A stretch of 64,000 nt of DNA. Origin: Octopus bimaculoides. Lineage: Eukaryota. The notes beneath the pieces are model-generated. The model did not search any database. It was not told the DNA's origin and was given only the letters and a program-made list of their open reading frames with translations. Positions within the stretch are counted from its first letter, which is position 1, and each line of letters opens with the position of its first letter. Below are positions 18,501 to 21,500 of this stretch, piece after piece. Location: NCBI RefSeq assembly GCF_001194135.2, contig NC_068988.1, positions 50,396,107 to 50,460,106 of the forward strand. The letters are read 5' to 3'. The translations under genes and the position numbers were made by a program.

Positions 18501-21500
18501 GCTGATCAAAATGAGTAATCTTGCAACAAACCAGCATCTCAACCAGGGAGGAATATATATATACCAGACCAACTTGGAAACTAGCCCTATACTCTTCACT
18601 GAGTAATGTGGACTAACCTAAGCATCTACATTACAAACTAAGAAAGAGATTTTATGATGTTGCAAAGGACAGCATTATGTTCTTGATAGAATCACTGTTA
18701 ATGGAGAACATCTCATACTGAAAGATGGACTATAATTAACAGCGGTTTGAGGAAAAACCAAGTAGCTTATCAAACACTGAAACAGTATTCATTAAATGCA
18801 GGCTGTTGAAGTTCTCTATGGTAAAGGGTCCAGATATGATCTTGTACAGTTTGTGGAAGGGCTGTCTTAGCATCATTTTAGATCCCTGGAAAAATTAATG
18901 CACTGGCTCCTATAGTATTATTGATGGCAAGCCACAGCATACATAGATAGAAATGGGTCCCTAGACTGGTAAGGCCTCCAGGCAACTGCCTGGTGTGCCA
19001 GTGCCTTAGGGTGGTCCTAGTCTGTGGACTGACCATATCACACTTTCAAAAGCTGGTCTTGCCATCTATGAAATGTCACCCAGCTGAGAACTTTTTGTTC
19101 ATTATGTACAAAGGTGTGCGCATCAATTTCTGGTTTAGAAATCCATTTTGGGTGAAGGTACAAGGATGGATTAGCTATTTGATGTGTTTCTTGACAAATT
19201 TCTTTTACAAAAAAAGGAAAATAATAATAGTTTACAACAAAATCCAGACCACATAGTCATTTGAAGAGGCATGGCAGAAAAACTGTCAAACATGTTGCGA
19301 CGAGTATGTCTGCAATGAGAAAGTGGTTGTGTCTGATAAAGTTGTATTGACCACTTTTATGTTTTATTCTTGTTTCATAATACTTACACTCACACATACG
19401 TACACATGCATACAGACATACATACATACAAATATGCATTTGTGTAGAGATATGACTAATACACAGCTGTTTTAGTAACATGTATTTGTGGTGCATATAT
19501 TTATATACATAGACACATACACGCATACACCCATATATAACATTTGTACCTTAGTTTCATTTTAGATGATATGATGTAGCTTTTAGGTTTCTTTTATTTT
19601 ATTTCAATTTTTGTTTGGGTTATTTTCTTTTTTCACACATTATCATGTTTTTGTTTCATTGTTGATGTGTATTGTCTCCCCTTGTTTGGCCTGTGTGAAA
19701 TTCTAATGGCAACTTCCTTCTTTCCCTCCGTACTGCTGCAGTGGACACCTGAGCACAAGCAGTGACCTTGCTCTGTGCGGTTCTCAATCCAAACTCTCCT
19801 ATCTGGCAGATATTCCGTAAGACATTCAGTTGCATGTTCTAAATGTAACCTGTCTACCTGTGCAAATCAAATCAAAAAAAAAAAAAAAAAAAAAAAAAAA
19901 AAAAAAAAAAAGAAAAGAAAAATAGTATATGTGTGCAAATGTGAATACGTATATATATATATATGTATGCTTGAATATATGTATGCGTTTATATACACAC
20001 ACAATTTTATGTATCTTGGTGTAGTATGTGTTAATGTTTGTGTGTGTGTGTATTATATGTATGTAATTTGAAGTAGTCTGAATGTGTGTATGCCTGCTGT
20101 TTATATGTATGTGTGCGTATGTATGTGTGTGTATATATACATATATATATGTATGCTTATGTGTGTGTGTGTATGTATGTGTGTATATATATATACATAT
20201 ATGTATGTATGTTTATGTGTATGTGTATTTATGTGTGGGTGTGTACGTGTGTGTGTGCTTATATAAGATGATGTGTGTGTGTGTGTGTGTGTGTACATAT
20301 ATAAGATGATGATTAAGTGTGTGTGTATGTATGTATGGACATATAAGTATATGTGTATGTATGGATATCTAAATATGTGTATGTATGGGTATACAAGTAT
20401 ATGTGTATGTATGGATATTTAAGTAAACGTGTGTTTATGTATATGTCTGTCTGTATAGTGTGTGTGTGTGTGTGTGTGTGTGTGTGTAATCTGCACCAGA
20501 ATTAATGTTGTTCATGTATGTGTATGTCATTGTTTTGTTGTTTTTATACTATTTTCATTATTCTTTTGATATGTGTTATTTCTACATATTTCTAGCAATT
20601 CAATTTTCATTCAGTTTATACATGCAGCTTCTAGTTTTTCAGCTATGCATGACTATTTTTTATTACTTACTAATTGCACTTGGAATATTTTTGCCCATCT
20701 ATACTGTTAACTGTGTCTTTAATCATATAATTATATAATTCAACCAAATAACTGGTACCTAGCAGGAATGATGCAAAATTGTGCAGAACACTGCTAAGGT
20801 ACATTCTGTTAGCATGCTTGCATGTAGATATACCTCTAATTATGTTCAACACTTAAATATGTTGTTTGTTTTTTTATTATCATACACACCCTAGTAGTTT
20901 ACACGATTAGAAGCCTCTTATGCTGGATGCCTTTTGGTTAATAAGCAAATACAGAACTACTATTAATCATCCTAACTGAAAGAAATAATTATTGTTGTTG
21001 CTGTTTGCTTCAGATCTCCATTTTTTGTTTGTTTTTTGGGGTCTTTTTTTTTTTCTTTTTCTTTTTGATCCATTTTAGCTACTAAATTCAGAACATTTGA
21101 ATGTCTTCTCCATTACTTTGGAGTAGAAAAATGGTTCTTCCTTCTATATTTTGTTTTATTGTATTTGTTTTTTTTTTTTAGCAAATATCCATGTCAGTTT
21201 GTTTATTTGTAGTGAGAGCAAGTACTAGCCAAAAAAAAAAAAAAAAAAATAGCTGTGAATGCACTTCAAATTTTTGGAAAAGCTAAAACAAAATAATGAA
21301 ACAAACACATACTGATAAGCACAAGCACAAACTTAACACAGAAACATTAACAACAATACCTTCAACAACAACAGTAATTACCCTTTGATAATGTGGCCAA
21401 CCACAAGGAAACACTAGACTGAACAAGGGTTACATTACAAAAGAGAGTACCTCCTTGCCCAACAAATTTATCCTAGAATGGATAAGGAAGACAGTAATAT

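Follow-up and report, generated by a model that had tools for sequence, protein, structure and literature searches.

A latrophilin-type receptor gene with a probable cassette exon for loop 3

We analysed a 64,000-nucleotide (nt) stretch of the Octopus bimaculoides genome (contig NC_068988.1, positions 50,396,107 to 50,460,106 of the forward strand), hereafter the window, whose + strand encodes a secretin-type seven-transmembrane receptor from transmembrane helix (TM) 2 to the C-terminus. The subject of this report is the 75-nt segment 19742-19816, located in the long intron between the exons designated E and F. Judged from sequence comparison across species, it is very probably a genuine cassette exon of a latrophilin-type adhesion G-protein-coupled receptor and the local counterpart of an exon for intracellular loop 3 that is conserved in molluscs. 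Positions are those of the window and are collected in Table 1; a slash within a nucleotide sequence marks an exon-intron boundary.

The translated exons matched the Pfam profile 7tm_2 with E = 3e-58 over profile positions 31-250, and the nearest solved structures were those of ADGRL2 and ADGRL3 (E = 1e-22). With a long composite query, the best matches were full-length latrophilins that have lectin, HRM, GAIN and GPS domains, and the top full-length matches to the receptor were from bivalves and gastropods, with 41-47% identity. The 113-residue peptide joining E, the cassette and F, when used as a protein query, returned short mis-called fragments and no useful relatives. A block of the cytoplasmic tail (DCSVIDSEYVSEYC...; ..DCSVI.S.YVSEYC..) was found in the window and aligned to nine mollusc tails, and the C-terminal S-E/D-C of latrophilins is also present, the receptor ending in FSEC. 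On these sequence grounds the gene is a latrophilin-type (ADGRL/Cirl) receptor. The window begins at TM2, and the exons for the N-terminal lectin, hormone-receptor, GAIN and GPS domains would lie outside it.

The E-F intron is in phase 2 and spans 18.5 kb, with about 9.2 kb on each side of the cassette. A preliminary description of this DNA had proposed 19742-19816 as a segment of 3n length (a multiple of three), open in the required phase 2/2, with a strong acceptor consisting of a pyrimidine tract and CAG, an upstream CTAAT, a GTAAGA donor and a TGCATG 15 nt past that donor. All of these statements hold, and the peptides that it had predicted for inclusion and skipping were reproduced exactly. 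The required reading frame of the segment is open and no other is. Joining E directly to F gives KEKI-K-GWIR, whereas inclusion would add 25 residues (six Ser, one Thr, one Tyr and one Cys) directly before TM6, so that ..SYLADIP would take the place of the basic KEKIK approach to the TM6 helix.

Table 1 Receptor exons and candidate splicing elements in the window.
Feature	Position	Strand	Remarks
Receptor exons placed	432-534, 7065-7215, 9184-9250, 9832-9898, 10401-10495 (E), 29039-29207 (F), 30000-30125, ~31756-32621	+	TM2 to the C-terminus
Exon E: TM5 end and first half of intracellular loop 3	10401-10495	+	3' end and donor ..ATA AA/gtaagt, phase 2; aligns to mollusc latrophilins and ADGRL2/3 structures
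Branch-point-like CTAAT (candidate)	19703-19707	+	A at -36 from acceptor; consensus match only
Polypyrimidine tract (19713-19729), then acceptor gtactgctgcag (ctgcag)	19713-19741	+	AG-free for 60 nt upstream of acceptor
Cassette exon (very probable), 75 nt, phase 2 in, phase 2 out	19742-19816	+	Encodes 24 residues between the junction Asn and the split Pro (25 added on inclusion); ends GAT ATT CC
Donor GTAAGA, preceded by TCC	19817-19822	+	Pro codon split CC/G; same donor form as mollusc cassettes
TGCATG, RBFOX-type hexamer (candidate)	19831-19836	+	Begins 15 nt into downstream intron
Exon F: loop 3 end, TM6 and most of TM7 (...FHCLLNDK)	29039-29207	+	Acceptor tttcag/A; starts cag/A GGA TGG

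In the downstream part of the gene (30100-31800), exon G (..GGA AAT/gtaggt, phase 0) and the last exon (tctctag/TT CGC AGT.., which needs one carried-over base) do not agree in phase at their obvious sites. The ..LLKFWSGRRRRKSS.. stretch that mollusc relatives have at this join was not found in the window. An overlooked small exon, use of a different donor or alternative tails may account for the out-of-phase join.

Correspondence with the loop-3 cassette of molluscs

Many mollusc latrophilins have an insert exactly at the E-F junction, and others are without it. Such cassettes are present in NCBI models of Ruditapes, Mercenaria, Mya, Dreissena, Mizuhopecten, Argopecten, Mytilus, Pinctada, oysters, Sinanodonta, Haliotis rubra and Biomphalaria, and five annotated loci served as references: those of the bivalves Ruditapes (L001), Sinanodonta (L002), Saccostrea (L003) and Pinctada (L004) and of the abalone Haliotis rubra (L005). 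At each of these loci the insert is encoded by an exon of its own, which lies between those for TM5 and TM6 and is in phase 2/2; the lengths are 57, 57, 75, 81 and 69 nt, respectively. All five cassettes end in [E/D/Q][I/L/M/V]-Pro, and the exon boundary interrupts the Pro codon, giving CC/GTAAGT or CC/GTAAGA. The window cassette, 75 nt long, in phase 2/2 and ending GAT ATT CC/GTAAGA, agrees with them in position, phase, length class and ending.

This ending proved to be rare. The end motif was derived from 14 mollusc cassettes with the window left out; in the window, an [EDQ][ILMV] codon pair followed by CC directly before GT occurs at a single one of the 7084 GT dinucleotides of both strands, namely that at 19817. 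On both strands of the six loci together (543 kb) the motif was found at 13 sites, at six of which the frame is open and an in-frame AG acceptor lies 27-180 nt upstream. The window segment is one of these six, and the known cassettes make up the other five; GTAAG donors occur at all six and at none of the seven remaining sites. The full signature gave no false positive in 543 kb, and a chance origin is therefore very unlikely.

Beyond the shared TM5-TM6 intron, phase and CC/GTAAG ending, the window and mollusc cassettes are alike in being Ser/Thr-rich, and the length of 75 nt recurs in Mytilus, scallops and oysters. An Asn-Gly start as in the window is found in Pinctada, which also has cag/TGG, and in Mytilus, where the junction Lys likewise becomes Asn on inclusion. 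The window differs from the mollusc cassettes in the middle of its peptide, which is not confidently alignable and is more hydrophobic (five Leu, one Cys), and in flanking introns that are much longer than those of the mollusc loci. The reference cassettes are themselves strongly diverged between bivalve orders. By position, phase, length and end motif, the window cassette corresponds at the sequence level to the cassette of bivalves and an abalone and is not an independent invention.

The loop-3 cassette is optional in other molluscs. Both isoforms, with and without exactly this segment, are present in NCBI for seven bivalve genera (Ruditapes, Mercenaria, Mizuhopecten, Mya, Dreissena, Argopecten and Mytilus, the last in three of the four species seen). 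Oysters have the included form only among NCBI models, and in Saccostrea, the sole oyster locus read, the introns beside the cassette are about 220 nt long. Among the isoforms of Haliotis rufescens and H. cracherodii, only the skipped form was found. The insert is also present in full-length reading frames on Logan contigs of 3.5-6 kb, which were taken as transcript assemblies.

Three further observations were made on the mollusc sequences. In Ruditapes, the intron that follows the cassette has two further [EDQ][ILMV]-CC/GT sites, spaced by 122 nt (45064 and 45186); they have the donor gtgggc and no in-frame acceptor, and look like copies of a local repeat, not exons. In Haliotis rubra, the deposited protein model has the end of the TM5 exon frame-shifted (28840-28890, ..QLPEREVQTAETQ..), and a shift of one base gives the frame of other Haliotis species (..NSLKEKSKLQKL); the discrepancy is probably an assembly or annotation error. 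A shared pattern SK..YL.[ED]IP in the peptides was an impression only, as profile and pairwise tests were non-significant.

Local splice signals and alternative explanations

All AG and GT dinucleotides of the 18.5-kb intron were scored with generic weight matrices. The cassette acceptor scored 6.35, rank 6 among 1102 AGs and inside the range of the gene's real acceptors (5.3-10.6). On its intronic half alone, the cassette donor is within the top 35 of the intron's GTs, and the exonic consensus is mostly missing in the gene's real donors too. Among the 17,853 AG..GT pairs with a spacing of 27-300 nt, the cassette is the only open pair of 3n length at or above both scores. With codon usage learned from the exons of this gene, the log-likelihood was +5.7 in the required frame versus -5.0 and -7.2 in the other two (P = 0.03 relative to open intronic windows and 0.09 relative to GC-matched ones), and the chance probability of a TGCATG within 20-30 nt downstream is 0.012-0.018; both favour an exon, each weakly. 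Pairing of a U-rich tract (19581-19633) with a downstream A run was considered as an RNA structure around the exon, but a fold of 19570-19930 had no excess stability over shuffled sequence (z = -0.04), which speaks against it.

Several results weigh against the segment being an exon of this family. By the full matrix the donor ranks 153rd among 1149 GTs, with a poor exonic half (TCC), and the matrices on which these ranks depend are approximate. The opposite strand, used as a control, gave one to two equally good open in-frame pairs per 64 kb, or an expectation of about 0.3-0.6 decoys per 18.5-kb intron; because the control strand yields such decoys, splice signals and frame do not by themselves establish an exon. 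Against a profile of the 14 cassettes, the window peptide obtained 1.5 bits and came 98th among the six-frame peptides of the window, and the best local alignment of the peptide (to P0018) had P = 0.08 against decoy windows and 0.34 against self-shuffles. Since the peptide similarity is non-significant, homology has to be argued from position, phase, length, composition, and the last three residues together with the donor. No cephalopod sequence was among the matches of any search. Scans of metagenome DNA for the cassette, with wobble positions free, gave no match, but neither did a control with 38 nt of exon F, so that this negative carries no information; two start variants of the reading frame of the last exon had no exact match on record.

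Decoys on the control strand and a peptide without significant similarity are also what would speak for a chance pseudo-exon, in which a long AT-rich intron happens to combine 25 open codons with a good acceptor and a usable donor, and the segment is never spliced in. Such a coincidence is highly unlikely in view of the mollusc ending, which was defined without the window and falls on one GT in 7084, the absence of false positives for the full signature, the codon score in favour of the required frame, and the presence of a cassette at the same junction in every mollusc class sampled. The comparative evidence is decisive here: because of the cross-species signature, chance is very unlikely and the core reading of 19742-19816 as an exon is well supported.

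A second alternative is a relic, that is, an exon descended from the ancestral mollusc cassette whose use was lost in this lineage. The two abalones with the skipped form only indicate that use can be low in some lineages, and the flanking introns of 9.2 kb each fit with this. Disuse, however, would not have preserved the open frame, the top-ranked acceptor, the AG-free zone, GTAAGA and the end motif since cephalopods split from bivalves and gastropods, and we regard loss of use as very unlikely. An origin from a transposable-element piece or a retrocopy is brought to mind by a run of about 40 A at 19874-19911, which begins 58 nt downstream of the cassette and could be the tail of an exon-mimicking insertion, and by the microsatellites on both sides of the island 19545-19873. 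Yet A and T runs are common in the window, no second copy of the segment occurs in its 64 kb, where other repeat families do recur, no target-site duplication surrounds the island, and no tRNA-like or other RNA-family match covers the segment. The structure shared with the mollusc cassette points to old, vertical descent. Repeat, duplication, RNA-family and fold checks pointed to no transposon, nested gene or structured RNA at the segment, and we consider an insertion of this kind extremely improbable.

Optional inserts at the same junction in other phyla

NCBI isoforms with and without inserts at the same junction are present within single species of scorpion, whitefly, amphioxus, sea star, brittle star and sea urchin, and in two nemerteans. 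These inserts, and those of beetles, share the junction and the implied phase with the window; gene structures were read from DNA in molluscs only, and phase elsewhere is implied from the proteins. On inclusion, the first residue changes from K to N or from R to S, which is what a phase-2 intron predicts. The other phyla differ from molluscs in that their inserts are lineage-specific sequences, none of which ends in the mollusc Pro motif, and in that several cassettes can be combined in some species (two or three in sea urchin and Lineus): the sea urchin has three combinable segments, and the two nemerteans have several segments at the loop-3 junction. Fish ADGRL3 also occurs with and without inserts, its isoforms reading LDNI-NYEDYDPEI-KSW.

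Comparison with the vertebrate ADGRL2/3 exons and predicted function

In ADGRL3, isoform 3 (7wy5) reads ..YEDNRPFIKSW.. where isoform 1 (7sf7) reads ..LDNIKSW.., and the junction aligns to KEKIK-GW of the window. The nine-residue insert, NYEDNRPFI, has been described (PMC10592476). The preliminary description had named this insert correctly (PDB 7wy5; PMC10592476), and it had been right to place an optional ADGRL2/3 insert at the equivalent junction, as structure and fish-isoform alignments have the same insertion point. Its further view, that the window carries an unrelated sequence at that position, stands in part: GHLSTSS...LADIP and NYEDNRPFI have no sequence resemblance, but a stand-alone invention is not upheld, since the mollusc cassettes correspond.

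ADGRL3 exon 24 (9 residues) and ADGRL2 exon 23 (15-16 residues) resemble the window cassette in being in-frame optional inserts just before the K/R-S/G-W of TM6, in changing the junction Lys to Asn on inclusion and in having clearly homologous receptor sequence on either side; their intron phase was inferred from proteins, not from DNA. They differ in being shorter and without sequence resemblance to it, and tested functions are known for the vertebrate exons only. Exclusion of exon 24 in mouse LPHN3 shifts coupling from Gs towards G12/13 (PMC10830413), and a 16-residue loop-3 insert in human LPHN2 lowers G12/13 activation (PMC12236479). For Adgrl2 exon 23, inclusion reaches 74% of transcripts in glutamatergic neurons, as against 49% in GABAergic neurons and 7% in endothelial cells (PMC13108381). 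The literature searched treats the loop-3 exon in vertebrate LPHN2/3 only, with no mention of invertebrates, and does not describe its conservation across phyla.

If 19742-19816 is the genuine cassette exon that we take it to be, its inclusion would replace the junction Lys by Asn and place a Ser/Thr-rich, probably disordered stretch of 25 residues, ending in Asp-Ile-Pro, directly before TM6. The insert would act as a flexible extension and lengthen loop 3, and it would be expected to change the loop's charge and the start of the helix at the cytoplasmic end of TM6, the G-protein docking site; further phosphorylation sites may come with it. Mouse LPHN3 exon 24 and human LPHN2 variant 13 suggest by analogy that inclusion would shift or weaken coupling to particular G proteins, and from the same vertebrate cases we infer a possible effect of the cassette on G-protein or arrestin coupling. 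Neural enrichment of the window cassette is plausible on the same analogy.

In vertebrates, UGCAUG in the proximal downstream intron favours exon inclusion through RBFOX. The window resembles RBFOX-enhanced neural exons in having UGCAUG within the first 20 nt of the downstream intron, and differs in having a single copy, for which the chance probability is about 1-2%. Within 300 nt downstream of the cassette, TGCATG is absent from Ruditapes, Sinanodonta, Saccostrea and Haliotis, all very distant species, and Pinctada has three copies at +241 to +282; in none of the five mollusc loci does the hexamer lie at the window's distance from the donor. The three Pinctada copies (16360-16407, within 45 nt) do not form a simple repeat, and a further GCATG lies 23 nt upstream of the Pinctada cassette acceptor.

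A wider interpretation, possible but somewhat doubtful at present, is that the phase-2 TM5-TM6 intron of latrophilins is an ancestral bilaterian splicing site that has always held one or more optional in-frame loop-3 exons tuning G-protein coupling. The peptide would have been free to drift except at short membrane-proximal endings, such as the Asp/Glu-hydrophobic-Pro of molluscs, and the window cassette and mouse Lphn3 exon 24 would be one device more than 500 million years old, here perhaps under neuronal control by RBFOX. In mouse, latrophilins were recently found to be spliced at loop 3, and this splicing selects Gs versus G12/13 signalling during synapse formation. If a cephalopod, other molluscs and many phyla do share the optional exon, this control point would be old and general, not a vertebrate refinement. 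The natural and very different inserts at one position would provide experimenters with comparison material, and the end-motif signature provides annotators with a simple finder of the cassette exon in mollusc genomes. The isoforms are already in automated NCBI annotations, and the advance is their recognition, not a new mechanism.

Other features of the window

The island containing the cassette is bracketed by a CA/TA-rich microsatellite (19369-19540) and a complementary TG/TA-rich one (19925-20500), which have inverted matches of 35-49 nt at 73-83%; the fold described above covered the inner part only (19570-19930). Nearby sub-threshold Rfam matches of the 'mir-297' type were rejected as TG/TA microsatellites.

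At 62584-63594 on the + strand, three open frames of 72-106 residues lie side by side, with non-coding sequence around them. One of the three is rich in cysteine (..CTDRNCTVCRF..), none has a Pfam match, and they resemble what is left of a mobile element. A dispersed repeat family is present in both orientations at ~8360-8630, 38400-38750, 46700-46980, 57830-58160, 60650-60900 and other places, with translations that have motifs in common (for example ..WFQVQSHCV..WASVFYY..); the family, probably a short interspersed element, does not include the cassette. Five runs of N (assembly gaps) occur at 27611-27620, 35207-35553, 52775-53249, 54993-55094 and 61574-61678, the first of which interrupts the E-F intron about 7.8 kb past the cassette.

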